Of a stretch of DNA of 64,000 nt, positions 18,801 to 61,976 are shown piece by piece. The stretch covers positions 136,085 to 200,084 of the forward strand of contig NIVC01002151.1 of the NCBI GenBank assembly GCA_002269645.1, read 5' to 3'. The translations under genes were made by a program, and so were the position numbers. The number at the start of each line of letters is the position of its first letter. Within the stretch, counting starts at the first letter, position 1. A model generated the notes under the pieces. It ran no database searches, was not told where the DNA came from, and saw nothing but the letters and a program-made list of their open reading frames with translations. The stretch is from Macrostomum lignano (lineage: Eukaryota).

Positions 18801-19964
18801 GAAAATTCTCTAGGTTTTTTAAGTCTTTTATGAAATGAAGAAGTACTTAAAGTATATAATGATATTGTAGCACTGTAGCTAAAACTTGAACTTGGGTTGT
18901 TTTTCATCAATCAATGGTCTTTTTATACTTTTGCACATATAACATGGCTTCTAGAAACTATAGTCTTATTTTCACAAACTGTAAGAACTTTCTATTTTAT
19001 CTAATACCATTTTAATAGTTTAAAAGCTTTTAAATAAGCTAAAAATAGTTCCTTAAGTGGACAAAATAAAAAACATTGAGAAAAGAGTTTAACAAACAAG
19101 TCAAGACAAATGCCAATATATTATAGCTCATGTTATAGTATAGGCTTTTTTAGATGATAAAAAAAGAAAAAGAAAAAATATTTATTGAAATATTTATAAG
19201 CTATTATTACCTTCTATAAAAGTATAAAAAGTATTTCATTCATTTTATTTTTTAAAGAAATTTTGTCTGTTTAAATTTTCAAATTTTCAATGGCAATTCC
19301 AATTGCCATTGGATTATTAGGAAAAAAATTATATTGGAAGTTATTAGAGTCTAATAGCAATGACTTGATTTAGCCACAGGGGGCTTTGTATATCCAGATA
19401 TAGCAAGGTATTGCTAGCTATTTTGCAATATAATATTATTAAAAAATATTGGTTTTTAGTATTCTAATATCTAAAAGATATCACTGATAGTATCAAAGTA
19501 TTGGATTTGTGCCCAACCAACACTATATAATATATTTAATTCTGCAAGTTTCCTTGTACTTGCAAAAAATTTCTAAGTTTAATATGATTTATGATTAATA
19601 TTTCTAAGTTTATTATGATTTTTAAACTTCCATTTGAACTATTTATCTACTAGTGGATAAATATTCTACTACCCATTAGATGGTCACCCCCTTGCAAATT
19701 TTAGAATTAGACCAATATATTCATACACATACATGCGCAACTGCTGGCTGACCTGGCCGATCCGGCCACCGTAAATCGTGGCTGACCAGGGGTAAGTCGC
19801 AAAATTGAGTCAACCAAAAACAGAAAAACACAAGAACCAAGAAAGGCAAGAGGAAAGCGAAATAAAGAGCAGTTCAGGGAAAATGGTGAAGCAAAAGAAA
19901 AACAATTCGCAAAAGAAGCAAACTAAGTTGTAAAAATAATCAGGTACTGGTAAGTCGCAACAGG

Positions 19965-20570
19965 AATCAGGTAAGTCGCAAAAGAAGCAAACTATGTCGC
20001 AAAAAGGATCAGGTAAGTCGCAAAAGGGTTAGGTAAGTCGCAAAAGGATTAGGTAAGTCGCAAAAGGGTTAGGTAAGTCGCAAAAGGATTAGGTAAGTCG
20101 CAAAAGGATTAGGTAAGTCGCAAAAAGGATCAGGTAAGTCGCAAAAAGAATCAGGTAAGTCGCAAAAGGATCAGCAAAGTCGCAAAAGGATTAGGTAACT
20201 CGCAAAAAGGATTAGGTAAGTCGCAAAAAGGATTAAGTAAGTCGCAAAAAGGATTAGGTAAGTCGCAAAAGGGTTAGGTAAGTCGCAAAAGGATTAGGTA
20301 AGTCGCAAAAGGATTAGGTAAGTCGCAAAAAGGATTAGGTAAGTCGCAAAAGGGTTAGGTAAGTCGCAAAAAGGATTAGGTAAGTCGCAAAAGGGTTAGG
20401 TAAGTCGCAAAAGGATTAGGTAAGTCGCAAAAGGGTTAGGTAAGTCGCAAAAAGGATTAGGTAAGTCGCAAAAGGGTTAGGTAAGTCGCAAAAGGATTAG
20501 GTAAGTCGCAAAAGGATTAGGTAAGTCGCAAAAAGGATTAGGTAAGTCGCAAAAAGAAGCAACTAAGTCG
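19965..20570. repeat. ~20-bp tandem array (AGGTAAGTCGCAAAAGGATT)n, an expansion of the element's subterminal motif
   Basis: TAAGTCGCA also occurs at 19794, 21963 and 21987, and as TGCGACTTA in copy C. Confidence 0.9.
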
Positions 20571-20824
20571 CAATAAGAGGGAAGTAAGTCACAATCAGAG
20601 GCAATCAGGGGGTAGTAGGTGCAAGTGTGGCAGGAGAGCAAAAACAGAATAGAAGCCTTCAACAACAGACAAGATCTTTGAAATCAGAAGCCCGCGTCAA
20701 CAGTTTCCCATTGATTTCTTAAACTCTGGAGCAGGGGTCGGCAAACTCCGGCTCGCGAAGCCCCTCTATCTGGCCCTCGCCCCTCGGGTTCTTTGAAACT
20801 TCCTAACTACGAGTAGCAAGGTTG

Positions 20825-21445
20825 GTGTCTCTTCAACTCTCATCTCTCTCTTCTTCTCTACCTTGCCTCCCCTCTTCTCTCTCCCCCCCTTTTCCCTCTT
20901 CTCTCTCCTCTCATTTTTACTCTCCTCTCTTCTCCCCCTTTCTCTCTACCCTTTCTCCTCAATGCCCTCTTCTCTCCTCTTATCTTCAGCAAAAATATGT
21001 GCATATTTTCTTTCTTCAAAGTAGAGGGAATAGAAGATTAGAGATAAGCAAACAGAGGAGAGGCGAGCGATGCGATGGGAGAAAAGATAGAAAAGGAGAG
21101 AAAAGCTGAGGGAGGAAAAAGAGATGAGAGAGAAGAGGAGATGAGAGGAAAGAGGAAAGAAAAGATGATGGATGAGATCAGAAGAGAGGAAAGAGGAAAG
21201 AGGAGAGAGTAGATGAGAGAAGAGAGGATAAAGAGGAGATGAGAGGAGAGTGAAGAGAGGAGAGATGAGAGAGTAGAAAAGAGAGGAGAGATAAGATGAG
21301 AGAGTAGAGTGGAATGGAGAGAGACGAGAGGAGAGATAAGAATGTAGAGAGGAGACAGAAGAGATAGGAGAGGAGAGGAAAGAGAGAAGGGATAAGGGAT
21401 GAGAGAGAAAAGAAAAAGAGGATGAGAAGATTGAGGAATGGAGAG
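20825..21445. repeat. CT-rich followed by GA-rich low-complexity tracts
   Basis: Direct reading. Confidence 0.9.
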
Positions 21446-21871
21446 AATTTGCAAAGGCCTCAAATCTTAGTTTAACATGCATTACTCCCATCTTTGCCTT
21501 TTTCCTAACTGTTAACAAGTTTTTGTTTGAGCATGACTTCAAATTTAGAATCTATGCAAAAATAGTTCCGGGAATTAGAATTCAGTGGTTTAAAAATCTG
21601 TGGGTTTTCACAGCTTGTATCTCTACTGGATTCGTATTCTGCATCTGATGAGCCATCTGAATCAGGGCTCTCATCTTCCATGCCAAATCGTCTAGCAAAT
21701 CGTTCTTGAGCTATAGGTCACACTGTATTCACTTCACTTACTTCTGGACATTCATGAATCATGACTTTTGTAGTATGCTCACTACACTGTACTGACAATT
21801 TACTAATTGCTTCATGCCGCCACTAGATGACACTGATTAGCTGTTATAAAAACGCGGAATCTGCACGCAGC

Positions 21872-21935
21872 ACTAATTAGCTGGCGAGGCATTTAGCTTT
21901 AAAAATATGGTCATAGTTACTCCTGCCGTTTACCT
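21872..21935 (-). other. 28S rRNA helix 69-71-like fragment inside element A
   Basis: Minus strand AGGTAAACGGCAGGAGTAACTATGACCATATTTTTAAAGCTAAATGCCTCGCCAGCTAATTAGT; 51/64 ungapped to the remembered eukaryotic 28S sequence. Confidence 0.8.
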
Positions 21936-22031
21936 AAAGTTTTTGCTTGGCTCTTTCATAGGTAAGTCGCATTTTTTATCGAAAACTAAGTCGCACGGCC
22001 AGCGTAATTTCAGAAGTTGCGCATGTATGTT

Positions 22032-22272
22032 CATACATGCGCAACCCCCCTGATTTACACTGGCTATGCAACTTACCTGTAAAAGAAACCCTAACGCAAT
22101 TTTGGGTAAACGGCAGGAGTAACTATAACTGTCTTATAAGGGCTAAATTCCTCGTCATCTAATTAGTACTACGCCTGTATTTTTAGGCTGGGCATTTTTG
22201 TGACTTACCCCTGGTCCACCACAATTTACAGTGGCCAGATCGGCCAGGTCGGCCAGCAGTTGCGCATGTATG
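22032..22272 (+). mobile_element. hAT-type MITE, short copy B of the CATACATGCGCAAC family
   Basis: Both TIRs present; flanks AATATATT (19714-19721) and AATTTGTT (22273-22280) are a degenerate TSD if copy A is removed. Confidence 0.8.
22104..22167 (+). other. 28S rRNA helix 69-71-like fragment inside element B
   Basis: GGGTAAACGGCAGGAGTAACTATAACTGTCTTATAAGGGCTAAATTCCTCGTCATCTAATTAGT; 54/64 ungapped to the remembered eukaryotic 28S sequence. Confidence 0.85.
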
Positions 22273-22791
22273 AATTTGTTAGGCTAAAAAAATCTATAAA
22301 AATGTGCATAATAAAAAACTATGGTCACCTAGGGAGGGATAGGAGAATAATCACCCTCTAGGGGGGATGGGAAAAAAGTCACATAGGAGCTACAGCCTCC
22401 TTTGCCCCATCTCATCTGTACCACCAAAATATTTATTGCAATAAAAATTTAATTTTTTAATATGTATATTATCATTTCTTAATTTTAAATCAATAAATTT
22501 AACATCATTTCATGCCCATTAGGGCCCATCCTCAAGGCACAGGAAATGTGCTGGTATGTTCTCAGCAGTCAGATGAACAGGTTAAACTGCCTCACCACTC
22601 GTTGCTTGACAATTTTAGATTGCCTGCAATCCATTAAAAACCTTCTATTTAGGACTTTATAGTTTAAAAGTACTGCAACCAATAAACTAATTAGAATCCG
22701 ACTTATTTGCCGAAATAATTAAGTGCATAGTTACTACCGCCTATATACCCTAATAAAATATATATTTAAAATTCAGGCTCAAACCAAGACA

Positions 22792-25099
22792 ATGCCGAAC
22801 AAGAACAAGTCGGCAGTGAATGCATCTAATAGTGGGCCGCCTCGGCCCGACAGCAATGACAATAAGAAACAGAAAACTAATAAAAAGCCAAAGAAAGATG
22901 ATGCCAGCTCCATAGTTGGCCTGAAGCAGCGCCTGAGCAGCATCCGCAACAAGCAGCGCAGGCAGGCCGCCTACCAGCAGGTCCGACAGGCCGAGCGTAA
23001 GGCCAAGGAGGCCGCCGTGAAGCTTCGCCGACGAAACGGTGCCGACAACGGCGCTGCCGGCCCAGCCAAGGAGCCACACACGCTGGAATCGCTGCGCCTG
23101 CCGGATGCCACCATGACTGGCCCGGCTGGGGACGCTGAGGTCGATGCTGAGGAGGCAGCCGACGAGTTTGCCGACATTCTTGACGCTGCTGGCGCTGGAG
23201 GCGAAGGTTGGCTACCGGATAATTGCGGCTTATTCTTTCGCCATTTTTACCTAGGGGTGCCATTTTTACATAGGGGTGCCATTTTACCTAGGGATGCCAT
23301 TTTTACCTAGAAGTGCTATTTTTACTGGGGGTGCCATTAAGGGTTGCCATATTTACCCAGAGGTGCCATTTTACTCAGGGAGGGGTACCATTTTGTCACA
23401 TTGGTACTGCCTTACGCATGGGTTTCCATATTTTTACCTAAGAAGCCATTTTTCTGCAATCGGTCAAACCCGAAAAAATGTCGATTTCCCCACCCCCAGG
23501 CCAAGCTCGCCTGCCCCGCCTGCTGGTCACTCACGCCGACGAGGTCGGCCGACGCACAGCCGCCTTCTGCCGTTGCCTGGCGCGCACCGTCCCCAACGCC
23601 GTGTTCTGCCGGCGTCGCCGACTGCCTCTCGGTCGGGTGCTCGCCGCCGCCAAGGCCAAGGAGTTCACCGCTGTGATGGTGCGCGATAATTTATCTACAC
23701 GTTTTTGAAATTTAGCAGCCTGTCTTTATTAAGCTACTGTTAGTAGAGCGAATTGCATTTTTATCTTGTATTTGTAATAACACAGAGCTTGCATATTTAT
23801 GCCTTTAGTGTTCAAAGTTACCATGGACTCATTTCGATAATTGATGCTTTATTTAAATCAATAATTTTTTATCTTTAATGGGTTGTAGCCTAGTGATTGG
23901 AGCGTCGGATACACGACTGAAAGGTCGGGTGTTCGATTCTCAACCCACTCGAAACAGATTGTGTCCTTGAGCAAGACAGTTAACTCTGCATTGCTTCAGT
24001 TCACCCAGCTGTAAAATGGGTGCCAGCATTAGCTGGGGTAAATTGAGGGTGTGTGTGGCGACCCTCTCAGTCCTTGGACTGAACAGCCGTACGCAGCCTT
24101 CAGATGCGCCGCGCAATAGCTGCGGCTGAGCTGTCGGTTGCACATCTGGCCATTAGGGCAGGTGTAATCAATTATTAATATTCTTTAAATGCACTTCTTG
24201 AATTCGGAATCAATTGCAGCTCGAAAGATCTTACGCTTAATTCAGTGTTGAAAGTTAATTAATTTCGATACATATCGGCAGTCGATCTTTTTAACGCCTT
24301 CTTAAAGACAGACAAATCAGAAAAATCTCCAGTGTTTAAATGTACTTTTCGATACATATCGTTAAATCAATTTTCAATCTAATCTTGATTTAATATTTCG
24401 CAGATTTAATAAAAATCCCCATTCTGAAAAAAGTTCTTTTCGATACATGTCGGTAATCGATCCTACCTAGGTTAGCAATGCCTCAGATCAGAAAAAAATC
24501 CCTGATTCTATTTGATGTACTCCCAAAGTCTTAATCGTAGGTCGGAAATCATCCTGTTTTTAACTTTAATTTCGATACATATCGGTAACTTTGGTCTAAC
24601 GCAGATAATTGGCGAGCACGACAAGAAGCCGTGCACCGCCCTGCTAACCCACCTACCGGCTGGGCCCACCTTCGCCTTCCGCCTGTCGAGCGTCCGGCTG
24701 CCCCGCGAGCTGCCCCGCCCGCCCGAGGACGACAAGCCGGAGACTGTGGCGCCGCAGGTGCTCTGCAATCGATTCCACACCCGTCTGGGCCGTCGGGTCG
24801 CCCGCGGCCTGGCCGCCATCTTCCCAGGCGCCAGCGGTGTGGCGCCGGCACGCCCGTGTGGTGACTTTTCACAATCAGCGCGACTACGTGTTCTTCCGGC
24901 ACCATCGCTACATCCTGCGCCAGCCTGGGTCCGGCGCCAAACCAGGCGCGAAGCCGCGCTGCGCTCTGCAAGAGGTCGGGCCCAGGTTCACCCTGAAGCT
25001 GCGCTCGCTGCAAACCGGACCGCTTGCGCCGGCGGCGGCTACGAGTGGCTGCACAAACGGCACGAGATGGACCAGAGTAGGAGGCGCTTCTTTCTCTGA
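22792..25099 (+). CDS. RPF1: Ribosome production factor 1 (Brix domain); exons 22792-23206, 23500-23678, 24605-25099; two compensating frameshifts in exon 3
   Basis: [103 protein letters not shown]; GT-AG junctions keep the frame. Confidence 0.9.
23238..23380. repeat. Degenerate ~20-bp repeat (CCATTTTTACCTAGGGGTG) in RPF1 intron 1
   Basis: Direct reading. Confidence 0.8.
23880..24165 (+). mobile_element. tRNA-derived SINE with CORE-like domain, in RPF1 intron 2
   Basis: A-box TAGCCTAGTGATTGG, B-box GTTCGATTC, then GTCCTTGAGCAAGACAGTTAAC...CAGCTGTAAAATGGG resembling the MIR/CORE domain; second copy at 31295-31502. Confidence 0.8.
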
Positions 25100-25194
25100 T
25101 TTTGGCGCCACCTGGCGTGTCTCACACCGGTTTCTGCTGGCTAACTGACTGCCTGCCATTGTGCTTCCTCACGCGATCTCGTCTCGATACCGCC

Positions 25195-27252
25195 CTTCCG
25201 TCTCTTCCGCCCCTCCTCCCGTCTCTTCCGCCCCTCCTCCCGTCTCTTCCGCCCCTCCTCCCGTCTCTTCCGCCCCTCCTCCCGTCTCTTCCGCCCTTCT
25301 CCCGTCTCTTCCGCCCGTCCTCCCGTCTCTTCCACCCCTCCTCCCGTCTCTTCCGCCCTTCTCCCGTCTCTTCCGCCCCTCCTCCCGTCTCTTCCGCCCC
25401 TCCTCCCGTCTCTTCCGCCCTTCTCCCGTCTCTTCCGCCCTTCTCCCGTCTCTTCCGCCCCTCCTCCCGTCTCTTCCGCCCCTCCTCCCGTCTCTTCCGC
25501 CCCTCCTCCCGTCTCTTCCGCCCTTCTCCCGTCTCTTCCGCCCGTCCTCCCGTCTCTTCCGCCCGTCCTCCCGTCTCTTCCACCCCTCCTCCCGTCTCTT
25601 CCGCCCCTCCTCCCGTCCCTTCCGCCCTTCTCCCGTCTCTTCCACCCCTCCTCCCGTCTCATCCGCCCCTCCTCCCGTCTCTTCCGCCCCTCCTCCCGTC
25701 TCTTCCGCCCCTCCTCCCGTCTCTTCCGCCCCTCCTCCCGTCTCTTCCGCCCCTCCTCCCGTCTCTTCCGCCCCTCTTCCCGTCTCCTCTGCCCCTTCTC
25801 CCGTCTCTTCCGCCCCTCCTCCCGTCTCTTCCGCCCCTCCTCCCGTCTCTTCCGCCCGTCCTCCCGTCTCTTCCGCCCTTCTCCCGTCTCTTCCGCCCCC
25901 TCCTCCCGTCTCTTCCGCCCGTCCTCCCGTCTCTTCCGCCCCTCCTCCCGTCTCTTCCGCCCTCCTCCCGTCTCTTCCGCCCGTCCTCCCGTCTCTTCCA
26001 CCCCTCCTCCCGTCTCTTCCACCCCTCCTCCCGTCTCTTCCACCCCTCCTCCCGTCTCTTCCACCCCTCCTCCCGTCTCTTCCACCCCTCCTCCCGTCTC
26101 TTCCGCCCTTCTCCCGTCTCTTCCGCCCCTCCTCCCGTCTCTTCCGCCCTTCTCCCGTCTCTTCCGCCCTTCTCCCGTCTCTTCCGCCCTTCTCCCGTCT
26201 CTTCCGCCCTTCTCCCGTCTCTTCCGCCCGTTCTCCCGTCTCTTCCGCCCGTTCTCCCGTCTCTTCCGCCCCCTCCTCCCGTCTCTTCCGCCCCTCCTCC
26301 CGTCTCTTCCGCCCTTCTCCCGTCTCTTCCGCCCTTCTCCCGTCTCTTTCGCGCCGTTCTCCGTCTCTTCCGCCCCTCTCCCGTCTCTTTCCGCCCCTCT
26401 TCCCGCCTCTTCGCCCTCCTCCCGTCTCTTCCGCCCTTCTCCCGTCTCTTCCGTCCCTCCTCCCGTCTCTTCCGCCCCTCCTCCCGTCTCTTCCGTCCCT
26501 CCTCCCGTCTCTTCCGCCCCTCCTCCCGTCTCTTCCTCCCCTCTTCCCGTCTCTTCCGTCCCTCCTCCCGTCTCTTCCGTCCCTCCTCCCGTCTCTTCCT
26601 CCCGTCTCTTCCGCCCCTTCTCCCGTCTCTTCCGTCCCTCCTCCCGTCTCTTCTTCCCGTCTCTTCCGCCCCTCTTGCCGTCTCCTCTGCCCCTCCTCCC
26701 GTCTCTTCCGCCCTTCTCCCGTCTCTTCCGTCCCTCCTCCCGTCTCTTCCTCCCCTCTTCCCGTCTCTTCCGTCCCTCCTCCCGTCTCTTCCTCCCGTCT
26801 CTTCCGCCCGTTCTCCCGTCTCTTCCTCCCCTCTTCCCGTCTCTTCCGTCCCTCCTCCCGTCTCTTCCGCCCCTCCTCCCGTCTCTTCCGTCCCTTCTCC
26901 CGTCTCTTCCTCCCGTCTCTTCCGTCCCTCCTCCCGTCTCTTCCTCCCGTCTCTTCCGTCCCTCCTCCCGTCTCTTCCTCCCGTCTCTTCCGCCCGTTCT
27001 CCCGTCTCTTCCTCCCCTCTTCCCGTCTCTTCCGTCCCTCCTCCCGTCTCTTCCGCCCCTCCTCCCGTCTCTTCCGTCCCTCCTCCCGTCTCTTCCTCCC
27101 GTCTCTTCCGTCCCTCCTCCCGTCTCTTCCGCCCCCTCCTCCCGTCTCTTCCGCCCCTCCTCCCGTCTCTTCCGCCCCCTCCTCCCGTCTCTTCCGCCCC
27201 TCCTCCCGTCTCTTCCGCCCTTCTCCCGTCTCTTCCGCCTTCTCCCGTCTCT
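25195..27252. repeat. 21-bp C-rich minisatellite (CCGTCTCTTCCGCCCCTCCTC)n running into the gap
   Basis: Direct reading. Confidence 0.97.
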
Positions 27253-28188
27253 NNNNNNNNNNNNNNNNNNNNNNNNNNNNNNNNNNNNNNNNNNNNNNNN
27301 NNNNNNNNNNNNNNNNNNNNNNNNNNNNNNNNNNNNNNNNNNNNNNNNNNNNNNNNNNNNNNNNNNNNNNNNNNNNNNNNNNNNNNNNNNNNNNNNNNNN
27401 NNNNNNNNNNNNNNNNNNNNNNNNNNNNNNNNNNNNNNNNNNNNNNNNNNNNNNNNNNNNNNNNNNNNNNNNNNNNNNNNNNNNNNNNNNNNNNNNNNNN
27501 NNNNNNNNNNNNNNNNNNNNNNNNNNNNNNNNNNNNNNNNNNNNNNNNNNNNNNNNNNNNNNNNNNNNNNNNNNNNNNNNNNNNNNNNNNNNNNNNNNNN
27601 NNNNNNNNNNNNNNNNNNNNNNNNNNNNNNNNNNNNNNNNNNNNNNNNNNNNNNNNNNNNNNNNNNNNNNNNNNNNNNNNNNNNNNNNNNNNNNNNNNNN
27701 NNNNNNNNNNNNNNNNNNNNNNNNNNNNNNNNNNNNNNNNNNNNNNNNNNNNNNNNNNNNNNNNNNNNNNNNNNNNNNNNNNNNNNNNNNNNNNNNNNNN
27801 NNNNNNNNNNNNNNNNNNNNNNNNNNNNNNNNNNNNNNNNNNNNNNNNNNNNNNNNNNNNNNNNNNNNNNNNNNNNNNNNNNNNNNNNNNNNNNNNNNNN
27901 NNNNNNNNNNNNNNNNNNNNNNNNNNNNNNNNNNNNNNNNNNNNNNNNNNNNNNNNNNNNNNNNNNNNNNNNNNNNNNNNNNNNNNNNNNNNNNNNNNNN
28001 NNNNNNNNNNNNNNNNNNNNNNNNNNNNNNNNNNNNNNNNNNNNNNNNNNNNNNNNNNNNNNNNNNNNNNNNNNNNNNNNNNNNNNNNNNNNNNNNNNNN
28101 NNNNNNNNNNNNNNNNNNNNNNNNNNNNNNNNNNNNNNNNNNNNNNNNNNNNNNNNNNNNNNNNNNNNNNNNNNNNNNNNNNNNNNNN
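27253..28188. other. Assembly gap (N run)
   Basis: 936 N. Confidence 1.
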
Positions 28189-31275: not shown

Positions 31276-31294
31276 TTCTAGCACACCAATGGGC

Positions 31295-31502: not shown

Positions 31503-31676
31503 CTAGTTATGATAACATAGATGCGGAGAGCAGGGGGACATGTCCCCCTCCAGTGAAACCTTTTGGGGGGACATACCAATGCTTTGTCCCCCCCAACCCC
31601 ACCTTGTAACCCGTTTTGGGAATCAATAATTTTGCTTCAGGTCGACAAAACGTAGCGCCCGTGTTCTTTTAGTATT

Positions 31677-36941
<5,265 letters not shown>

Positions 36942-36983: not shown

Positions 36984-37470
36984 TTGAGTGCCTGTGACGC
37001 TAAAATGAGTGCCTGCGGCGCTAAAATAAGTGCCTGCGGCGCTAAAATGAGTGCCTGCGGCGCTAAAATGAGTGCCCACGGCGCTAAAATGAGTGCCTGT
37101 GGCGCTAAAATGAGTGCCCACGGCGCTAAAATGAGTGCCTGCGGCGCTAAAATGAGTGCCTGCGGCGCTAAAATGAGTGCCTGCGGCGCTAAAATGAGTG
37201 CCTGCGGCGCTAAAATGAGTGCCTGCGGCGCTAAAATGAGTGCCTGCGGCGCTAAAATGAGTGCCTGCGGCGCTAAAATGAGTGCCTGCGGCGCTAAAAT
37301 AAGTGCCTGCGGCGCTAAAATGAGTGCCTGCGGTGCTAAAATGAGTGCCTGCGGCGCTAAAATGAGTGCCTGCGGCGCTAAAATAAGTGCCTGCGGCGCT
37401 AAAATAAGTGCCTGCGGCGCTAAAATAAGTGCCTGCGGCGCTAAAATAAGTGCCTGCGGCGCTAAAATAC
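36984..37470. repeat. 21-bp minisatellite (GAGTGCCTGCGGCGCTAAAAT)n
   Basis: Direct reading. Confidence 0.97.
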
Positions 37471-38024
37471 TAAAAAACTAAATGAGTGCCAGCATATGGA
37501 TATATATATATATAATTACGCTCGTAAATATATATATGCATATGGATCTATTAGCTAGTTAATAAGGCAAGTAAAATATGTGAAATATTTACTTGAAAGG
37601 CCATCCATGCCAGCAAAACGCTAGAAAAGTACAAGGATCTCTCGAACAATGTCCTGGGCCTGTACATTAGCATCAGATCCTTGACTAGCTGCTGGAACCC
37701 CCGCTGTTCTGAAATTTAATAATTAATTGCTTCCCTCTTGGCTACGCCCCGAGCTCTCCGGCTGAAATCCGGACCCCACTCGAGGGCAGTCCAGAAAGAA
37801 GATCCACATTGCGTGTTGAGCAATCAGCCCAGTGAGACAAGCAGACTCTGGCATGGGTTATTAATCATGACAGATCCGCTTGAAAATTCGAAATTGCTAG
37901 GAATCGAAAAATGTCGATAAAAATTAATTTATTTTTTATAGCTTCTGTTGCTGGGTCGAATTGTAGCTGATTCTCGCGCCTGATTGGTAGAGGGTTTGCG
38001 TGCAGGAATATCTTAGCAAAATTG

Positions 38025-38408
38025 AGTTTGATTTAGAGTTCGAGTTCAATTTCAAGTTCGAGTTCGAGTTCGAGTTTATGTTCGAGTTCAAGTTCGAGTT
38101 CAAGTTCGAGTTCAAGTTCGAGTTCGAGTTCAAGTTCGAGTTCAAGCTCGAGTTTAAATTCGAGTTCGAGTTCAATTTCAAGTTCGAGTTTAAGTTCGAG
38201 TTCAAGTTCGAGTTCGAGTTCAAGTTCGAGTTCAAGCTCGAGTTTAAATTCGAGTTCGAGTTCAAGTTCGAGTTCAAGTTCGAGTTCAAGATCGAGTTTA
38301 AATTCGAGTTCGAGTTCAAGTTCAAGTTCGAGTCTGAGTTCGAGTTTGAGTTCGAGTTCAAGTTCAAGTTCGAGTTTGAGTTTGAGTTCAAATTCGAGCT
38401 CGAGTTCG
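38025..38408. repeat. Hexamer repeat (TTCGAG/TTCAAG)n
   Basis: Direct reading. Confidence 0.95.
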
Positions 38409-38882
38409 AATACCAATGCACCAAACATCGCTGTGTCAATCAAACGCTCTATTCGCGGACGCACTAGATTTGGGAAGCCAAAAGCTGATACTTTCCAAAG
38501 TCCCACACAATCTGCAGCTGCCATCAGGGCAGGTACTAAAAGGAAGTGCGATTTCGGTCCAGCAATCTGCAGCTATTTTTAAACTCGCCACCAAAACCAA
38601 ATCCTCTTTTGCTTTCTGACGTTCCAGAAAATGAATTGCATTTGGGGCCGCCGATCTTCGCTTTGCTTTCGACGTGCCTGCGGTGAAGGGTTTGGTTAAA
38701 TTGCCCCCCCCCTGCCCCCCGTGTCCCCGCGGTGCCAGCATCTATCTAGGAATCTCTGTATGAACTCTAGGCTGGGCCAGAACACTCCCTGCTACAGTGT
38801 TAGATCTTAACAGCAGATCTGGGGGGGACCTTGCCAAAGCATTGTTATGGAGGCTACAACTTGAACTGCAAAGATCTTATAG

Positions 38883-40286
<1,404 letters not shown>

Positions 40287-40654
40287 TAAGCTTTCATACC
40301 CCATCAACAAGCTAGAGATCAATGTACATACTTTCTGGGTTTTTAGATAGCATTAAAACTATTTAAAGTGACTCCAATGCTAATACTCAAAGTTAGGCTA
40401 TTCGGAAGTCGTATTGGTGACAGATATCGATCGGAAATGATTAAAATTCGAACGGCTGGAGTGGATCGCGCTGCACTGCTCTTCTATGAAATTTCGTATA
40501 ATTTTCTGTTTGTCAGTTTTGCTTCCTGTAGCATTGAGTACTGCTGCCAGTGCGCTTGCAGACGCTTCTGGGGAAACCTGATGGGAAGGTTGGGAGAAAA
40601 ATAGGGAAACGGGAAATTGTAGTTTTGAGGTGGAAAGAGGAAAGAGAGGAGAGA

Positions 40655-41880: not shown

Positions 41881-43119
41881 TCTTCCAGCAACAGTTTTAA
41901 CAAAGGCGGACCACAGTTTCAAAACCCTTTTAATAAAGCCTCAAGATAAGTCATTCAGATCAACAGACCTTTTTCAATATTGATTGCAGCACTTGTTCTG
42001 CTGTTCAAGGGAGTTGCTTGGGGATTTCTTTACCAGAAAATCATTTCACGCTGGGGCAGCGCTGTTTGTTAGAATGGAGACCAGATGGTTAAAATTGGAT
42101 AAGGAGTGAAACTATAAGAGGAGAAAAGACGAGAGCTGACCCAGAAACAGGGGGGCAAGTAACGAGGAGAATTATCCTTTGCTAAGAAACATTTGGCCAA
42201 CCCAGAAGAGAAAATGCTTGTCCCGGCTGCTTGGCCATTCATTTCGGACTGCGAACATCTCCATTCTGCCCCCTGCCCGCAAAGTCCCCCCCGGGCAGAT
42301 TGCTGCCCCCCATCCCGAGGCCCCAAGAGCTTTGATAGCTTCGAAAGCTTGGCCTCCCTAAAACACGCTGACAAGGGGGAGGCGAGAGAGAGGGAGAGAC
42401 TGCAGCAGCTGTACGAGTAATGGCTGCTGTAAGGGAGAGGCAGACCAGAGGGCGTGGTGGGGCTTCAAATGGACTGCCTGCAGCAGCAGCAGCAGCAGCA
42501 GTGAGGGGGGTAGCTTAGCATTTTTGTGCCGTGCGCCCACCAAAAGTGCAGACGGATCGCTGATTACCGATACTGCCTGGCTGCCTGACTGACTGAACGG
42601 CCCGCAGCGCCTCCTGTGCAGCTTCAGAAGCAATGGTTGAGGAAGGGACAGTGAAGAACAGCGGGCGCATTGTTCGGCTTTTTCGGTCTTCACAACTGCA
42701 CTGGACAGTCCAGAGCCCCGCTCGCGAACTGCAGCGGCCAATGGGAGAGGGGCGAAGACTAGAGGGTAGCGGAGAGGCTGCTGGGGACGATGCGGCACTA
42801 AGAGCATCGGTGGACAGAGTTGCGCTTCCTGTTGCAGTACACACCAACGGGCGGGGGATAAGATACAGCACCGGAGAGTCGGGCAATTTACGCCCAAAGT
42901 GGATTTTAGTTTCCACTGCTGCAGTGGCTGTCCATAGGCCAGCGTCTGACAGCTCGCATTCATAGCCTTCGAGCAGCGCTCTCGCGGCTTGTCAACCTCG
43001 CCAAGTGGGCCGTCTGTTCCTGCTGGTTCAGCGCTACCGACAGCGCGCACGATCGGCCCTCAGCCGTCGATGCTGAGTAGCTGGTGGCGGCAGCGGCAGA
43101 TCGGCAAAACCATTGCGCC

Positions 43120-46100
43120 ATGGCCACTGCCACCACGGCCGCTTCTGCTTCAACGAAGCTGCTCACGACTGCGGCTGCGGCAACGACGACAGCTGCGACA
43201 GCCGCGGCAGCCGCCAACGGAACTCGCTCGTCGCTGGCGGGCCCGCTGGCCTGCACCGGCCAGCGCAAGTGGTACATCTTCCTGGCCAGCAGCGGCATCG
43301 TGCTCCTTGGCGGCGTCCTGTTCGTCCTTGTCTACCGCCTGCTGTCGCACCTGGCCGGCAAGATCGGGGCCGGCAGGGCCGGCGCCGCCGGCAAGCAGCC
43401 GGAGAACAAGGAGAAAACGGATGACAGCGGAGACGAGGATGAGGCCGACGAGTCAACCGAAGAGGAAGTCGAAGTCGGCTGGCTGACGGAGGCCAAGGAC
43501 TGGGCGGGCGAGCTGATCTCCGGCCAGACCACCACAGGCCGCATCCTGGTGGTGCTGGTGTTCCTGATCAGCATCGCCTCCCTCATGGTGTACATCATCG
43601 ACACGGCCAGCATGAAGCAGACCGAGGAGTGCATCCGCTGGTCGGACAGCCTGTCCCAGCAAATCGATCTCGCCTTCAATGTCATCTTCCTGATCTACTT
43701 CTTCATCCGGTTCATCGCCGCCCAGGACAAGCTGCTGTTCTGGTTCGAGATGTACAGCCTGGTGGACATCCTGACCATACCGCCGTCGTTTGTCTCAATC
43801 TACCTGAACCGCAACTGGATCGGGCTGCGCTCGACTCGAGCTCTGCGCATCCTCAGCCTGCCGGACGTGCTGCAGTACCTGAACATTCTGAAGACCAGCA
43901 CGAGCATCCGGCTGTTCCAACTCATGACATTCTTCGCCTCCCTGGTGCTCACCGCGGCCGGCTTCGTGCACCTGATTGAGAACTCGGGCGACCCGCCGTC
44001 ATTCACCAATCCGAACATCAGCTTCAACATGACCTATCCGACCTGCATCTATTTTGTTATCGTGACAATGTCGACTGTGGGCTACGGCGACATCTATTGC
44101 ACCACGAGCACCGGCCGGCTGTTCTCCGCCCTGGTGATCATGGGCGGTCTGGCCGTGTTCGCCAACTCCATCCCGGAGATCGCAGACATTCTCAGCTCGC
44201 GCAACAAGTACGGCGGCTACTACCGCAAGGAGGCCGGCAAGCAGCACATCGTGCTGTGCGGCCACATCACCTACGAGTCCGTGGCCAACTTCCTCGGCGA
44301 CTTCCTGCACGAGGACCGCGAAGATGTTGACGTCCAGATTGTGATTCTGGACAAGCACGTGCCCGACCTGGAGCTGCAGGGCCTGTTCAAGCGTCACTTC
44401 ACCCAGGTGGAGTTCTTCCAGGGCTCCGTGATGAACTCCAAGGACCTGTCCCGGGTGGGCCTGGAGACGGCGGACGCTTGCCTGGTGCTGGCCAACAAGT
44501 ACTGCCCCGACCCGGATGCTGAGGATGCGGCCAACATCATGCGCGTGATCTCCATCAAGAACTTCTACGAGCGGATCAAGGTGATCATCCAGCTGATGCA
44601 GTACCACAACAAGACTTACCTGCTGAACATCCCCAGCTGGGACTGGAAGCAGGGCGATGATGCCGTCTGCATCGCCGAGCTGAAGCTGGGCTTCCTGGCG
44701 CAGAGCTGCCTGGCGTTCGGCTTCTCCACCCTGCTGGCCAACCTATTCACCATGCGCAGCTACAAGGACGACAAGGCCATGCCGAAGTGGCTCAACAACT
44801 ACCTGGAGGGCGCCGGCATGGAGATGTACACCGAGTACCTGTCGCCGGCGTTCGAAGGCCTGACGTTTCCCATGGCGGCTGAGCTCTGCTTCACCAGGCT
44901 GAACCTGCTGCTCATTGCTGTAGAGGCCAAGAACGACCAGGGCACGGAGAGCTGCATCGCCATCAACCCCAAGGAGAACATCCGCATCGAGCAGGGCACG
45001 CAGGGCTTCTTCATCGCCCAAGCGGCCGAGGAGGTCAAGAAGGCGTTTTTCTTCTGCAAACGCTGCCACGGCGACGTCGAAGACTCGCGTCTGATAAAGA
45101 AGTGCCGCTGCAAAACTTCTGTGGCGATAACGGCCAAGTCAAAGTCGCAATCAAAGCAAAAGCAACTGCAACAACAGCAGCAGCAAAAGCAGCAGCATCA
45201 GCAGCAGGCAGCAAATCCCAGGAGCAGAAATCACCCGGGCCAGGGCCAGAACTCGCTACCGGTTGCTACGGGCGGCTTGGGCGACGGAGGCGGCGCGAGT
45301 CCTGGCCGGCACCTGCAGCTGCCGGGATCGGCTCCGGAGCCGGGGGACATCAGCCACAGCAGCCGGCACGGCAAGCTCTCTGTGGCGCACACCAACCCGA
45401 TCTCGCTGCAGAAGCTGCACGATCAGATGGACCGCAAGTTCGACTCCACTGGAATGTTCCACTGGTGTCCAGATGTGAACTTCGAGGACGCGATTCTGGA
45501 CCGCGAGCAGGTCACGGCGACGGTGTACTCTAACCACATCGTCGTCTGCCTGTTCGCCGACGCTGGCAGCCCGTTGATCGGCCTGCGCAACTTCGTGATG
45601 CCGCTTCGGGCGAGCAACTTTCATTATCACGACCTCAAGCACGTGATCTTCGTAGGCAACGCCGACTACATGCGGCGCGAGTGGAAGACGCTGATGAATT
45701 TTCCCAAGCTGAGCATCTTCCCCGGCTCCCCGCTCAACCGGTCCAACCTGCGCGCGGTCAACATCAACCTGGCCGAGATCTGCGTGGTGCTGAGCTCGAA
45801 GCAGGCTTCGAATCTGGACGACCCGACTCTGGCCGATAAGGAGGCCATTCTGTGCTCGCTGAACATCAAGGCGATGAAGTTCGACACCGAGGCTCCACCG
45901 ACTCAGCAGGTCGCCACCACGCCACCGAGCTCCAATAACAATGTCCGAATCCTGACTGAGCTCTCCATGGACGATAACGTCCAGTTCCTCGAGCAGGACG
46001 ACGACGATGACCCCGACATCGAGCTGTACATGACGCAGCCGTTCGCCTGCGGCACCTCGTTTGCCATCAGCGTGCTCGACTCGCTCATGAGCACGGCCTA

Positions 46101-46605
46101 TTTCAACGAGAATGCGCTGACGCTAATCCGGACGCTCATCACGGGCGGAGCAACGCCTGAGCTTGAGCAGATCCTGGCCGAGGGCGCCGGCATTCGCGGC
46201 GGCTTCAGCACGCCGGAGTCGTTGGCAAACCGGGACAGATCGCGAGTCTCCCAGCTGGCGGTTGACGACGAACGACTTCGAGAATTTGTCACCGGAGCCG
46301 GGGCGGTGTACTCCGACCTGTTTCTGGGCGCTCTGCACCGGTACGGCATCCTCTGCATCGGCCTGTACCGGCTGCTCACCCCGCCGGAAGAGGGCAAGCA
46401 GACGCTCAAGAAGCGCTACATCATCACGAATCCGCCGGCCAAATTCCCGGTGCTGCTGTCGGATAGGGTGGTCTGCCTGCAGCGGTTCACCAACCAGCAC
46501 GAGGGCCGGCACAGCCACGGCAGCGGCGCAGCAAGCGGCGGCCCCGGTGGCTCCTCAATTGGCCGGCCGCCTCCGGGAGGCCTGCAGCACCAGAGATCCG
46601 CATGA
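43120..46605 (+). CDS. slo: Large-conductance Ca2+-activated K+ channel alpha subunit (Slo1/BK), 1161 aa from the first in-frame ATG, single exon
   Basis: S0 [25 protein letters not shown], pore [12 protein letters not shown]1 HIVLCGHIT, heme motif CKRCH, calcium bowl [24 protein letters not shown]; uninterrupted ORF; AATAAA near 46889. Confidence 0.97.
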
Positions 46606-54860: not shown

Positions 54861-55521
54861 GTGTTCAATTACATCGAATTAAATGCCTGTTGTTCATTCT
54901 CAACCCAATATTCTCGGGCCGCAAACCCAGAGGAAAGAAAAGCCACATAAATTTAAGTGACACTTTTCAGTAGCGCAGAAAAACTACTGAAAAAGAGTAG
55001 ACGCCTACTTTTTCACAACTTTTTAAAGTGACGCATCTAGTTATGTCAGTTTCTGTAAGTAACACCAAGCAAAGGTAATAAATCACAATATACTCGCTTC
55101 ATCCGGGAATCAAACGTTAGATTAAAACATCGATAAATCTTTATACAATAGAGAATGACACAAATAGCTCGTACTAGTAATCTACTAGTGTAGGTCCGCA
55201 GTTCGATGAATCCACAAGCGTTGCGTAGCATTGGTTTCAAGCTAACCTATGGGGTTTGCTTATATGCGAAACTGCGAGCTTGTAAGGCTGGTAATTGTAC
55301 GAGTAATAAAAAAACTATCGGGTTTAGGAAATTTTCCAGCTTGTAATCTTGTCCGAATTTTTTGTCATTTCCAGCTTATGTAATTTTGAACCCGCCCTTT
55401 CGAGAGTTTTTTTTCGTAATTTCAAAGTTATGTCATTTTGAACTTGTGTCATTTTTATATTTGTCATTTTGTCGAACTCTACATTTTTTGGAGCCTGTGC
55501 ACCCCACCGACCCCAGCCAAA

Positions 55522-58503
55522 TCAAGCAATAGCATTGGCATCCCAGTTAACCACCAGACCGCCATTGTTATCATTGTTATCATGCTGCTGCTGATCCCCA
55601 TCACAGGAAGAGGCCTGCAAACTAGCGGGCGGTGTGTAAGCCTCGCCCTCTGTTCGATAATACCGATTCGCTTCCCGTTCAATTCGAATCACTCTCTCGC
55701 AGTCGGCCAGGTAAGTCAGCGAGCAGGCTAGGAAGGCGCCGCCACCCAGCACGGACACGAAACAGCAGCAGTACATGGCCAGCTGCAGGGCGCTGAATTT
55801 CACAGCTACCGAGGCCGAGTTTTTGGCAATCAGATCCGACGCCAGGCCAACCAGGTAAGGCGAACCGGCGTCTCCCAGCAGGTGGCTGGCCAATATATTG
55901 ATACTAGTAGCCATTGACCGCCTGGTTGGCACCGTCACTCTCAGTGTGATCTCATTAACCAGAGCCCAGTTCAAGCACAGCAGCAACTCCGTGGCGAACA
56001 TCAGCACCAAGGTTAGGTACACGCTAACTGGCACCAGGTACAGGGTGGCCCACAGGAACGGGCCAGCCAGCAACAGGCCTGCGCCGTTCACAATGGGATC
56101 AATATTCGGCATTCGATGGCGCAGCCGCCTGGCGATCTCGCTGCCCAGCGCCACCCCGGCGATGCCAGCCACGCAGGTGACAATGCCGAAGCCCAGGGCG
56201 GCTTGGTCGGGTTTAACTGGGCCGCCGCGCAATTGCAGATCCAAGTCCAGCATCAGCGGAGTCCACCAGGTCAGGGCGCCGGCTACGAAGGCAACAGCGG
56301 TGAAGCCGAGGGTGTTGAGCATGAAGCTGCGATTGCGCAGCAGATGGCGGACATCGTCCCGCCAGGAGGTGGCGTGCATGTGCGTGGATTTCTCGGCTTG
56401 GCCGCAGGCCGGCTCCCGGAACTGGAGCAGCAGCAACAGGACGCAGACCACGCCTTGGAAAGGGTTTGGGAGATTCTGATAAGATCTACCTGAAGATTTC
56501 ATTACTCAACCTGAAGATTTCAATAATCTACCTGAAGATTTCAATAATCTACCTGCAGATCTACGTGAAGATTTCAATAATCTACCTGAAGATTTCAATA
56601 ATCTACCTGCAGATCTACGTGAAGATTTCAATAATCTACCTGAAGATTTCAATAATTTACCTGAAGATTTCAATAATCTACCTGAAGATTTCAATAATCT
56701 ACCTGCAGATCTACGTGAAGATTTCAATAATCTACCTGAAGATTTCAATAATCTACCCGAAGATTTCAATAATCTATCTGAAGATTTCATTTATCTACCT
56801 GAAGATTTCATTTATCTACCTGAAGATTTCAATAATCTACCTGAAGATTTCAATAATCTACCTGAAGATTTCAATAATCTACCTGAAGATTTCAATAATC
56901 TACCTGAAGATTTCAATAATCTACCCGAAGATTTCAATAATCTACCCGAAGATTTTAATAATCTACCTGAAGATTTCAATAATCTATCTGAAGATTTCAT
57001 TTATCTACCTGAAGATTTCATTTATCTACCTGAAGATTTCAATTATCTACCTGAAGATTTCATTTATCTACCTGAAGATTTCAATTATCTACCTGAAGAT
57101 TTCAATTATCTACCTGAAGATTTCAATAATCTACCTGAAGATCTACGTGAAGATTTTATTAATCTACCTGAAGATTTCAATTTAATCTACCTGAAGATTT
57201 CAATAATCTACCTGAAGATTTCAATAATCTACCCGAAGATTTCAATAATCTACCTGAAGATTTCAATAATCTATCTGAAGATTTCATTTATCTACCTGAA
57301 GATTTCATTTATCTACCTGAAGATTTCAATTATCTACCTGAAGATTTCATTTATCTACCTGAAGATTTCAATTATCTACCTGAAGATTTCAATTATCTAC
57401 CTGAAGATTTCAATTATCTACCTGAAGATTTCAATAATCTACCTGAAGATTTCAATAATCTACCTGAAGATTTCAATAATCTACCTGAAGATATACGTGA
57501 AGATTTTATTAATCTACCTGACGATTTCAATAATCTACCTGAAGATTTCAATTTATTCTACCTGAAGATTTCAATTTATTCTACCTGAAGATTTCAATAA
57601 TCTACCTGAAGATTTCAATAATCTACCTGAAAATTTTATTAATCTACCTGAAAGTCCAATAATCTACCTGAAGATTCGGAGATAATCTACCTGAATATAC
57701 CGAGATAATCTATCTGAGGATCCAGATACTATTACAGAGATCCAGCAGCAGGATAATAAGCCCTTTAACAACCTCAATCCTCTTGAACAGCAAAACAACA
57801 ATCCTAAAACTTGAAACTCACCAAGACCTGGCGTGACCCGTAGCGCTGATCTCCAGCTATCGGCTGCCTGAGCCACCTGGCCGCCAACCACGTAGCCCAG
57901 ACCGCTGCCCAGGGGTACCTGCAGATTGAACACAATCAATGCCACGGTGCGAGCGTCGCCCACAAACAAATCGGCCACAATAGGTGTTGACACCGTAATA
58001 TAAGAGGCTTCGCCAATGCCAACTAGGCAACGGGTTAGCAGGAACAGGCCGAACTGGTTCTTAGGCACGAACGAACTGGCCAAAGTGACCGCAGACCAGG
58101 CGAGCACACCGCCAATCATGATGGTCTTGCGGCTCCACAGACTGCCAGGACTGCCGCGATCGCCCAAGTAGCCAAATAACGGACTAAGCAGCATGTAGGA
58201 TACAATAAATGAAGTCTGCAATAATCCAGCTTCACTATTGTCTATTTTGTAATCTTTTTCGATTCGATCGAGTACTGCTGCTACGGTGAATCTGTCCATA
58301 TAGTTGAGCAAATTAATGCAGCACAGTACAGCAATTGAGATCAGAGCTTCGGATTTGCTGATTGTTGGCTGACTGCCAGATGAGTTGTCTATGGTTGAGC
58401 CATCAGCGGTGGTCACCTGCGCATCGTCCTGCAGGTCGACGTGATCAACTTCTTCATTGTCAGTGATTGAGGCAGTCTGACTAGCGTCAATGTAAGCAGA
58501 CAT
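55522..58503 (-). CDS. SPNS1: Spinster-family MFS transporter, ~537 aa; exons 58503-57822 and 56453-55522
   Basis: NLLNYMDRFTVA, AGLLQTSFI, TRCLVGIGEASY, ALRVTPGL|GVVCVLLLL..REP, LGFTAVAFVAG, SHLLGDAGSPYLVG; GTGAGT donor and AAG acceptor in phase 1. Confidence 0.93.
56483..57720. repeat. 21-bp minisatellite (CTACCTGAAGATTTCAATAAT)n filling the spinster intron
   Basis: Direct reading. Confidence 0.97.
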
Positions 58504-61500
58504 GCTGATGACTAGATAGTCTGGGATTTGTTTGGGACATGAGAATATTGGGAGAAAATATAGAACTTTTATAAGGTTTTTATAACAATATTTTGTTTTA
58601 ACCTTTTTGTTTTGTTTTTTTTATTTTAAGAGTATTCTAACAAAGTTTTTAATGTATTTTGAATCAATTTTTATGAGATAGCAAAGTAAAAAAATTGCAC
58701 AAAATCTCCAAGATGCCATTTTTGAGAAAAGTATTGATAGTATCTATTATTTTGAAAAGATTTAAAAAAGAGATTTGATTTTAGATATTTAGGGAATTAC
58801 TTCAATCTTCATCAAAAGAACACAAAAGATTAAACAAAAGAATTATGGATTACAAAGAAACTAGCTATACCCTATCAGAATATTTTTTCTGTATAATAAA
58901 CTTAACCAGAGTTCTCCAACAATGACAATATAAAATAGCTTCAATGAGCATACTTGATTTCTCTATGATCTTTGTATAAGTCACATAGTCACTTTTGGTA
59001 TATTTATAAGATATAATAATATATCATAGTCTAAAACATAACTTAAAAATTAATTAAAATAATTATTATGTCTATACAACTTTTTATAGGTTTCAATAAT
59101 GCTAGAAATATAGATAAGATAAAATGAAAATTTAATAATAATTTAATTCGATTTTAGTATAAGTCAGTAAGACAAATTAATAAGTTAATTAGTAATTAAG
59201 TACCTTATGATTATGCTCTAGGATTCTAGCTATACAAAATGAAACCCTAGGAAAAGTTTTATAAGACTTGGAATGTGAGGACATATTGTAGAGTGCTATA
59301 TCTCCCAAGAAAAGTCATACAAATTGTTAACATACTACTTATAAATTTTATTCAGTAATATAGCAAAGAGCACGTACAAAAATAAGTATTGAACCATGAC
59401 TACACTTATGTTAACCAATCGAAACTGCAAAAAAGTTGGTCATGTTATTTTAGTAACCAACCAATCACTCGTGACCCACAATTGTCAAGTCTAACCCTAT
59501 CTGCAATTCATCATCTGGCTTGCACCCAGTCTGCACCAAGCAAACCAATCAAACGCTACAGAAAAACACCAGATATGGTAACCAATCATTTGTGCTTACA
59601 CTAGAATAGTTGCACAACTTTCTGCCCTGTCATGCTTGACAGCGGCCAGAAGCTGAACCTTTGACATTTTCAGAAATTGTACCCAGTGCACAATTAATAA
59701 CCCCATGAGGGTCTGATTGCCTATAAATACAAGTGGTCCGGAATGGACCCAGAGCCAACAACTTCTCCAAGAGAGAGAAGCTCCAAAGAGGAAGCCATAG
59801 TTGGACTTCCTGGAATCAAGTCAACCGAGCCTTGGTTGAGTTCTTGTGGTAAGCCTTACTCATTTGTGCCCATTGTGTGAGACATCTTGCTTAAGTCTAG
59901 TGTGACTTGAGTTTGTTTGAGTCTGTTGAGACTCTTGAGTCTAGTTAGACTCCACTGGTTGCAGTCTCCAGAAGGACTGCCCCTGATATATCTTAGAAGA
60001 CTATCAGTGGTTTCTGGAGCTATACCTAGAGTGCATAGAGGCACTGCTAGAAGGAGTAGGCTTATATTAAATGGCAGTTTGGCTCAGGGTACCCATTGTT
60101 AATTTGGAAGCTTCCTATTGGTCCGAATGACAGATTCTGGCCAGAACTAACTTCTACAGAAGAGAAGAAGGAAACTCGGACCTGATCTATACCTGAAGAC
60201 GTCTAGAAGTCTACAAGATCTACTGAGAGATCTATAGTTGAGAACTACTCAAGGATGAGAGCTACGAATCTAGATTAAAGGTAATTGAATACCTTCAGTT
60301 GACTTACTGGGTTGCCTAGCTACAGAGCTAGAAGTGATTGCTCCTTGATTATTGGAAGTTGGGTAATAAGGAACATCAATATAGAGGCTTTGCATGTTAG
60401 CACTAGAGCTTGGTAATCAAAAAAATATGACATACTAACCCAACTAGCTTTGGGTACTCTGACCATTCAGCTAGGCAAAGCTACAATTAAGCAAGTCTTT
60501 AGTAAGCTATTGAACTTCTTAACAAAAAATTCAACAAGCTTAGTAAATTGTTGATTGATGCCTACCTTTTTGTTTGATACTATGTACACTAATCTGGGCT
60601 AGCTAGTGAAAAGAGTCTATAACCTGCAAAAACTTTCCATTGACAAATGTCTACATTCAGTCAGCTAGGAAGGCTTGCTAGCATTTATAGAATTCCTTCA
60701 ATAGCAAAAAAATGCTAATAAGGCCAAGAAAGATGCATAAAACAGATAGAAGAGCAGCTTGCTGCTAAGATTGAAGTAAACAAAAAGAAGATAGAATTAG
60801 AAGTTGCTAAAAAGTTGGCTACAGAGCATGAAAAATTGAAGCTAAGAAGCAAGCTACTTTAGCTATGCTACTTGAGTACTAGAAGAAAATTGTTAAAAGA
60901 GCAAGAGGCCAGAGCTCTATATGATGATGCCAAGTTACTAAAGAGAAAGTTGATGACTCAAGATAAGCTAGCTGCAAAAGTGCTGAAAAAAGCTGCAAGG
61001 ATGATATACAAAACAAATTAATGCTGCTTTTTTCATCAAAATTGTTATGTCATTTTCAATTTTGATATGCCATTGGCATTAAATATAAAATAGCACTTTG
61101 TAAGTTCATATTACTGTTTCTTTTTAGGATAATATTTGAACAAATTTAAAAGCAAAACTGAAATTTAAATTGGGGATTCAGCATTAGCAATTTGGCAATG
61201 GCATAATGGCAAAAATCATTTAAGCCATTGTAGCATACGAGGCTCGTAATAGCATCAAAATCATTATGTCATTTTTAGTTTTGACATTTCATGGCATGCC
61301 TATGACACAAAAAAACCTAGCTGCTATGCAAATCACTAACAAACAAAAAATGGTATAAATTAGTAACAATTAAGATAATATTATACATTGTGATAGAAGC
61401 CAGGTGGGATAAGATGATTGGGATCCCAGCCAATATTAGGGCCTAGTATCCTAGATTTGTTATTGTACAAATAGAAAGGAATTGAGATAAAGCAAAAAAT

Positions 61501-61697
61501 AATTAAAAACTACCATATTTGGCTTATAAAAAGCAATAACTACAATCTTTGCTAGTTTAAATTATTAATATATTATCCATTAATTCCATTATCTAACTGA
61601 TAATAATATTATAGCATTTCTTGGTCAATTTGGTCCTAGAAGCAGTCAATTTAATCTGCAATAGAGAACTCCAATTCAATTTGCTAACACTAGAGAT

Positions 61698-61976
61698 CAT
61701 ACATGCGCAACCTCCGAAATTCGGTTGGCCATGCGACTTAGTTTTAACAAAAATGCGACGTAGTTTTTGGCCAAAAATGCGACTTACATGTAAAAAACCC
61801 TAAAGCAAAATTAATGCAACTTTGGGTAAATGGCAGGAATAACTATGACGGTCTTATTAAGCCAAAATGCCTCGTCAGCTACTTAGTACTACTACTTGGT
61901 TATTTTTTTGGGTGGGCATTTTTGCGACTTCCTTGGTTGGCTGCCAAATCGGTCGGCCGACTGTTGCGCATGTATG
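61698..61976 (+). mobile_element. hAT-type MITE, copy C (279 bp) of the CATACATGCGCAAC family
   Basis: 14-bp perfect TIRs; perfect 8-bp TSD CTAGAGAT at 61690-61697 and 61977-61984. Confidence 0.92.
61824..61887 (+). other. 28S rRNA helix 69-71-like fragment inside element C
   Basis: GGGTAAATGGCAGGAATAACTATGACGGTCTTATTAAGCCAAAATGCCTCGTCAGCTACTTAGT; 50/64 ungapped to the remembered eukaryotic 28S sequence. Confidence 0.8.

Follow-up and report, generated by a model that had tools for sequence, protein, structure and literature searches.

Introduction

MITEs (miniature inverted-repeat transposable elements) and other non-autonomous DNA transposons that have captured host fragments (transduplication and Pack-type elements) are short, non-coding and multi-copy. 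They are bounded by inverted termini and target duplications, and they spread a host-derived internal segment by transposition. Here we describe a family with the same characters in the model flatworm Macrostomum lignano, found in the terminal 64 kb of contig NIVC01002151.1 (GCA_002269645.1); this stretch is called the window below, and its position 64000 is the contig end. Unlike Pack-type elements, whose cargo comes from protein genes, the M. lignano family carries a piece of 28S ribosomal RNA (rRNA) coding sequence, which has been retained across diverged subfamilies. Mobile elements with rRNA-derived sequence are few, and the M. lignano family would be an addition to them. The event itself, the capture of a host fragment by a transposon, is known; this is a new instance of it, with an unusual cargo.

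Pokey and mPok of Daphnia, in the piggyBac superfamily, are a DNA transposon and its MITE derivatives tied to the same stretch of 28S (PMC4912750). Pokey inserts at a TTAA adjoining GGTAGCCAAATGCCTCGTCA and contains internal sequence derived from ribosomal DNA (rDNA) (PMC4912750; PMC10946416). Its cargo comes from the intergenic spacer (IGS) and internal transcribed spacer (ITS), whereas the M. lignano cargo comes from 28S coding sequence; and Pokey resides inside 28S genes with TTAA duplications, whereas the M. lignano copies lie in non-rDNA with 8-bp duplications. SINE28, the short interspersed elements (SINEs) derived from 5S rRNA, and the TRIMs (terminal-repeat retrotransposons in miniature) Cassandra and Ajax also disperse rRNA-derived sequence (PMC4994717; PMC10946416 Table 2). 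These are retrotransposons, whereas the M. lignano carrier is a cut-and-paste element; in the 5S-derived elements, moreover, the rRNA part supplies a promoter, whereas the M. lignano fragment has no known promoter function. A retrotransposon without long terminal repeats (non-LTR) has likewise internalised 28S sequence from around its own target (PMC5035012). In that case the acquisition went with a change of insertion site, and no counterpart of this can be shown in M. lignano. A 2024 review of rDNA and transposable elements names SINE28, Pokey with its IGS repeats, and the SINEs and TRIMs derived from 5S as carriers of rDNA-derived sequence (PMC10946416). Neither that review nor targeted literature searches turned up a DNA transposon that carries 28S coding sequence, and the M. 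lignano family may already be annotated in Dfam or Repbase.

Results

Three copies of one element with perfect inverted termini

A first-pass annotation, made by a model from the letters of the window, had reported three copies of an element with shared 14-bp terminal inverted repeats (TIRs), two of them with perfect 8-bp target-site duplications. Both observations were borne out. The 14-bp terminus CATACATGCGCAAC occurs exactly 6 times in the window, against 0.27 occurrences expected by chance, and always as a member of one of 3 inverted pairs (starts at 19728/22016, 22032/22259 and 61698/61963). These pairs delimit copies A, B and C:

19728..22029, minus strand: copy A, 2302 bp, both termini perfect
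19720..19727, no strand: left target-site duplication of A, TTCATACA (partner 22030-22037)
22030..22037, no strand: right target-site duplication of A, TTCATACA (22032-22037 are the first 6 nt of B's terminus)
22032..22272, plus strand: copy B, 241 bp, perfect termini
61698..61976, plus strand: copy C, 279 bp, perfect termini
61690..61697, no strand: left target-site duplication of C, CTAGAGAT (partner 61977-61984)
61977..61984, no strand: right target-site duplication of C, CTAGAGAT (partner 61690-61697)

Sensitive blastn and nhmmer searches revealed no further copies in the window. Target duplications are perfect (8/8) for A and for C, and the flanks of B after removal of A (AATATATT and AATTTGTT) match at 6/8 positions. 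The right duplication of A takes in the 6 outermost nt of B's terminus, which is most simply explained if B was there first and A inserted into its extreme end. As a result of this insertion, A and B stand head to head, 2 bp apart.

B (241 bp) and C (279 bp) are small and non-coding, with short open reading frames (ORFs) only, and have the inverted termini and target duplications of MITEs. A is a 2.3-kb, repeat-padded relative, homologous to B and C over its 5′ 170 nt (core included) and its 3′ 80 nt. The interior of A is filler, made of a tandem array and simple repeats without recognisable coding sequence. A transposase remnant was sought in A; only a 58-aa ORF with no Pfam match was found, and with this content A is not autonomous.

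The array is built on a subterminal motif. TGCGACTTA is a direct repeat with 33 exact occurrences in the window (0.42 expected). Every one of them lies within A or C, in element sense, and they stand close to both ends. Inside A the motif has been amplified:

19949..20554, minus strand: tandem array in A, ~30 units of 20 bp, every unit with TGCGACTTA

TGCGACTTA, a probable transposase-binding site, has thus expanded into a minisatellite in A. The 20-bp unit of the array reads GGTAAGTCGCAAAAGGATTA.

Each copy contains a fragment of the 28S H69-H71 region

The first-pass annotation had compared the interior of each copy with a 28S sequence and proposed a match to helices 69 to 71 (H69-H71). Our reference was a real 28S segment taken from metagenome contig L027. 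This stretch of 28S is almost invariant across dozens of eukaryotic 28S genes recovered from metagenomes. With blastn, the segment matches three places only in the window, namely the cores of A, B and C, and the ungapped identities of 51, 54 and 50 of 64 positions were reproduced exactly:

21871..21934, minus strand: 28S-like core of A (51/64; blastn E 3e-14; Rfam LSU_rRNA_eukarya E 0.37)
22104..22167, plus strand: 28S-like core of B (54/64; blastn E 5e-17; Rfam E 0.0016, model positions 2199-2320)
61807..61887, plus strand: 28S-like region of C, with its 64-nt core at 61824-61887 (50/64; blastn E 5e-11)

The resemblance to H69-H71 is upheld by these E values (5e-17 to 5e-11) and by local-alignment z-scores of 22-29 for the cores against shuffled sequences. 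LSU_rRNA_eukarya is the top Rfam family for B and A. C had no match to this family, and no copy attains its gathering score (23.4 bits vs 50). In C, a gapped alignment to 28S reaches ~81-84 nt, with ~17 nt more on the 5′ side (AAATTAATGCAA vs AAATTCAAGCAA in 28S).

The similarity is unevenly distributed. In ungapped comparisons with 28S, each copy matches at 20-22 of 23 positions in either flank of the core and at 9-10 of 18 in the middle; taken together, the flanks match at 41-44/46 against 9-10/18 in the middle (p 3e-4 to 2e-3). Only 2-4 of 6 base pairs of H69 and H71 are kept, and conservation is therefore unlikely to concern a fold like that of rRNA.

The failure to attain the Rfam gathering score is what one would expect if the cores were chance resemblances or plain rDNA pseudogenes and not transposon cargo. 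We give this explanation next to no credence. The E values reach 5e-17 and all z-scores exceed 22, values that rule it out together with the inverted termini and target duplications that enclose the core in non-rDNA surroundings. Seen as rRNA genes or rDNA pseudogenes, the copies lie below the Rfam threshold, have broken helices, and are flanked by transposon sequence. Two other candidates were also rejected. An element inserted in rDNA, of the R2, R1 or Pokey type, does not fit a 28S-like piece that is contiguous and internal, with outer flanks that are not rDNA. A SINE (e.g. SINE28) is contradicted by the perfect inverted termini, the 8-bp duplications and the lack of a tail.

A, B and C have common junction sequences and a common G-to-A variant, GGCAGGAG, which argues for one capture of 28S sequence. 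The variant by itself is not diagnostic, since genuine 28S genes carry it: a metagenome scan with GGCAGGAG retrieved genuine 28S genes and no relatives of the element. Taken together, the termini, target duplications and common junctions bear out the earlier proposal that a DNA transposon captured a 28S segment and dispersed it. That this is a mobile, non-coding family with a fragment of the 28S H69-H71 region, captured once and then spread, is well supported.

Relatives at other loci

The genome of M. lignano is highly repetitive and recently duplicated. About 250 kb from other M. lignano loci were fetched via BK-channel and Spinster paralogues, much of it near-identical duplicate contigs. 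Counted over some 130-150 kb of non-redundant sequence, the independent sample comprises five core-bearing copies (A, B, C, L004o and L004d) and 1 relative that lacks the core. The ORF of a long interspersed element (LINE) in the window, used as a handle for more loci, yielded 4 proteins only.

Copy C is also present in a duplicate contig, NIVC01004089.1 (L002 6542-6838), at 97.7% identity, within a surrounding duplicate region that is 98.95% identical. The copy in L002 differs from C by 6 substitutions, an 18-bp insertion near the 3′ end and one mismatch in each terminus; the insertion is similar to the GGCCAG-repeat region, which is longer in A and B. L004o (L004 ~4910-5165) is an old, decayed copy in which the right block of the core is kept, and the termini and left block are degenerate, a loss expected once a copy ceases to be a source. 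L004d (L004 8258-8328) is a core within a very different sequence context. Upstream of it lie a possible terminus-like ACACAGGCGCAAAC and a AAAATGCAATTAAG motif; outside the core, its resemblance to A, B and C is at the level of motifs only. Compared with 28S, L004d matches at 41/45 positions in the blocks and 8/18 in the middle (p 2e-4).

L004o and L004d are each common to three contigs that are ~99% identical. With C included, three insertions occur in duplicate contigs of ~99% identity, so no fewer than three insertions are older than the last duplication or split between alleles. The family is dispersed and diverse. Many near-copies of a 28S stretch that is among the most conserved and the most frequently targeted would be scattered through a model flatworm genome, which has practical consequences in M. 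lignano for the masking of rRNA, the mapping of reads and the annotation of repeats.

The core-less relative is a 165-bp element at L007 ~2120-2281 that ends in the family terminus GTTGCGCATGTATG. It has no 28S-like core, and its interior is unrelated and internally palindromic.

Two blocks of the captured fragment are conserved

The first-pass annotation had asked whether the core is more conserved than the rest of the MITE. This holds for both of its flanks and fails for the middle, as seen in the identities among A, B and C. The termini agree at 100%, the 23-nt left 28S-like block at 87-96% and its 25-nt right counterpart at 84-88%. Identity is 56-67% in the 18-nt middle and 55-78% over the aligned columns of the rest of the interior.

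The flanks are the feature that stands out, and the middle behaves as ordinary interior. The blocks are more conserved than the rest of the interior in each of three pairs (Fisher p 0.002-0.011), pairs that are not independent of one another. This pattern hints at a role in cis for the flanks, and it is the one feature that merits attention genome-wide.

We consider the following account somewhat more probable than its rivals combined. The family is a non-autonomous cut-and-paste family, presumably moved by a transposase encoded elsewhere. Its lineage once captured ~65-85 nt of the 28S H69-H71 region and passed them to every descendant. In the source-element lineage, selection would have retained the two halves of the captured piece (~23 nt each) as a cis-acting module, in the form of a protein-binding site or else of an expression element inherited from the parental autonomous element. 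The intervening 18 nt would be unconstrained and drifting from an ancestral state that was already damaged, and the altered cut site would be a by-product and not a design. Within this account, the status of the two blocks as a selected cis module is tentative.

Several observations weigh against it. The sample consists of five independent core-bearing copies only. Alignment outside the core, which is AT-rich and indel-prone, is uncertain and may understate identity there. The last 80 nt of A and B are 90% identical, equal to the blocks, and the elements may thus be mosaics and not uniformly diverged. Homology was measured against the 28S of eukaryotes other than the host and against the Rfam model. 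L004d, whose missing 3′ end casts doubt on its membership, could be an independent 28S fragment outside the family. The autonomous partner with the same TIR that the first-pass annotation had anticipated did not turn up either: neither the window nor the ~250 kb of other loci yielded additional termini or a transposase.

The main rival is a neutral passenger. The 28S piece would have been captured by chance, through template switching in gap repair or through two nearby elements moving together, and would play no role; the flank conservation would then be an effect of sampling or alignment. Reviews describe capture of host fragments by DNA transposons as common, and the small number of copies, the similarity of the 3′ 80 nt of A and B, the AT-rich and indel-rich non-core sequence and the broken rRNA helices are all compatible with such a history. 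It accounts less readily for blocks that exceed the remaining interior in all three pairs, or for the recurrence of intact flanks and a scrambled middle in the diverged L004d. We regard the passenger explanation as a serious possibility of clearly lower probability than the cis-module account.

A more specific proposal is that selection maintains the blocks as a two-part module that imitates a target, to which the transposase of the element itself or an rDNA-binding or R2-type protein would bind. We consider this unlikely, while keeping it in view. If true, sequence from a ribosomal gene would have been made a functional part of a cut-and-paste element, perhaps as the trace of an ancestry tied to rDNA. 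More generally, should flank conservation extend across the genome, the family would offer a tractable example of a host fragment that, once captured, turned into a working part of a transposon.

The cut site is altered, probably not by targeted disruption

The middle 18 nt span the cleavage site of R2 and of the endonuclease I-PpoI. The first-pass annotation had called this cut site altered, and as a description this is accurate: the middle retains 9-10 of 18 positions of 28S, and the I-PpoI 15-mer does not occur anywhere in the window within 3 mismatches. The further suggestion of a specific disruption fared less well. The middle varies between copies as other interior sequence does, and the consensus CTTATTAAGGCT (28S: CTTAAGGTAGCC) is common to A, B, C and L004o, so part of the lesion was already present in their ancestor. 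The evidence points away from a targeted disruption of the cut site.

These results bear on the idea that the core is a decoy for, or a scar left by, an R2-type nuclease. The flanks would then keep binding sites, and the middle would have been selected, or damaged again and again by cuts and faulty repair, until it could not be cut. Relative to the R2 cut site the blocks lie at roughly -36 to -11 and +4 to +28, and R2 protein reportedly contacts DNA at roughly those positions in work on Bombyx. The middle does vary from copy to copy, the I-PpoI 15-mer is kept in no copy, and flatworms have R2 elements (PMC5035012). Some flatworm R2 families, however, have lost 28S specificity (PMC5035012). The part of the lesion common to four copies is ancestral and not recurrent, and the divergence of the middle equals ordinary interior divergence, with no need of an extra force. 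No R2 element came to light; the one LINE that the window contains has an endonuclease of the APE type and is not R2-like. Host-level selection across thousands of dispersed copies would also be hard to sustain. A decoy or scar is accordingly rated very improbable, and a benefit of the cargo to the host is unsupported in the present analysis.

Slightly less probable still is a role for the elements as a source of rRNA-matching small RNAs or as a nucleolar tether. Such a role would draw on the head-to-head arrangement of A and B: as a single strand, 21860-22180 would fold back into a hairpin of 320 nt (-150 kcal/mol, z -16) and bring the two 28S-like cores into pairing. This hairpin is, however, an accident of one nested insertion and not a property of the family, and B and C alone have no such structure. 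It also gave weak, spurious matches to miRNA families in Rfam.

Interruptions of the same stretch were encountered in environmental 28S genes. In ten metagenome contigs (L009, L012, L015, L017, L024, L026, L030, L040, L041 and L060), 28S is interrupted exactly within ...GACTCTCTTAAGG by unrelated sequence, which illustrates the frequent invasion of that site. Metagenome contig L051 contains a ~635-bp satellite with 51-bp sub-repeats in which the left 28S block is embedded.

Classification of the transposon

The first-pass annotation had classed the family as a hAT-type MITE. The MITE features, the short termini of 14 bp and the 8-bp duplications (A and C 8/8, B 6/8) are in keeping with this. 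Duplications of 8 bp are not exclusive to hAT elements and are also made by the P superfamily and some others. The consensus of hAT termini begins YARNG, and the CATAC with which the M. lignano terminus starts deviates from it at positions 3 and 5. One of three sites follows the hAT target consensus nTnnnnAn: CTAGAGAT fits, and TTCATACA and the flanks of B do not, in a comparison limited to three sites. A hAT assignment is plausible. An alternative home may be the P superfamily, in which termini start with CATG and 8-bp duplications are likewise made. We file the family as a hAT-like MITE and not as an established hAT.

Other features of the window

Positions 58501-64000 of the window are 100% identical to the reversed end of NIVC01002151.1. 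The sole run of N lies at 27253-28188, between the A/B pair and C, with a CT-rich minisatellite on its left flank. This assembly gap touches no copy. As every copy lies in unbroken sequence, the finding stands whatever the continuity or frame over the gap may be.

ORFs at 22723-25099, just downstream of B, have the look of a ribosome-biogenesis gene of the RPF1/Brix type; frame errors are possible, Pfam returned nothing, and no claim is made for them. The LINE, at 31700-36350 on the minus strand, is a degenerate non-LTR retrotransposon disrupted by frameshifts, in which an APE-type endonuclease and part of a reverse transcriptase can be recognised. Throughout the window there are long arrays of micro- and minisatellites (e.g. 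5081-5446, 25100-27252, 36984-37481, 38000-40300 and 56466-57185). They yield spurious ORFs of hundreds of codons, and the gap interrupts one of them. An intronless BK (slowpoke) potassium-channel gene of 1161-1173 aa occupies 43084-46605, and its 1173-aa ORF is 100% identical to an M. lignano BK-channel protein. Near-identical copies of this gene are found on at least three contigs, which fits a recent genome duplication.

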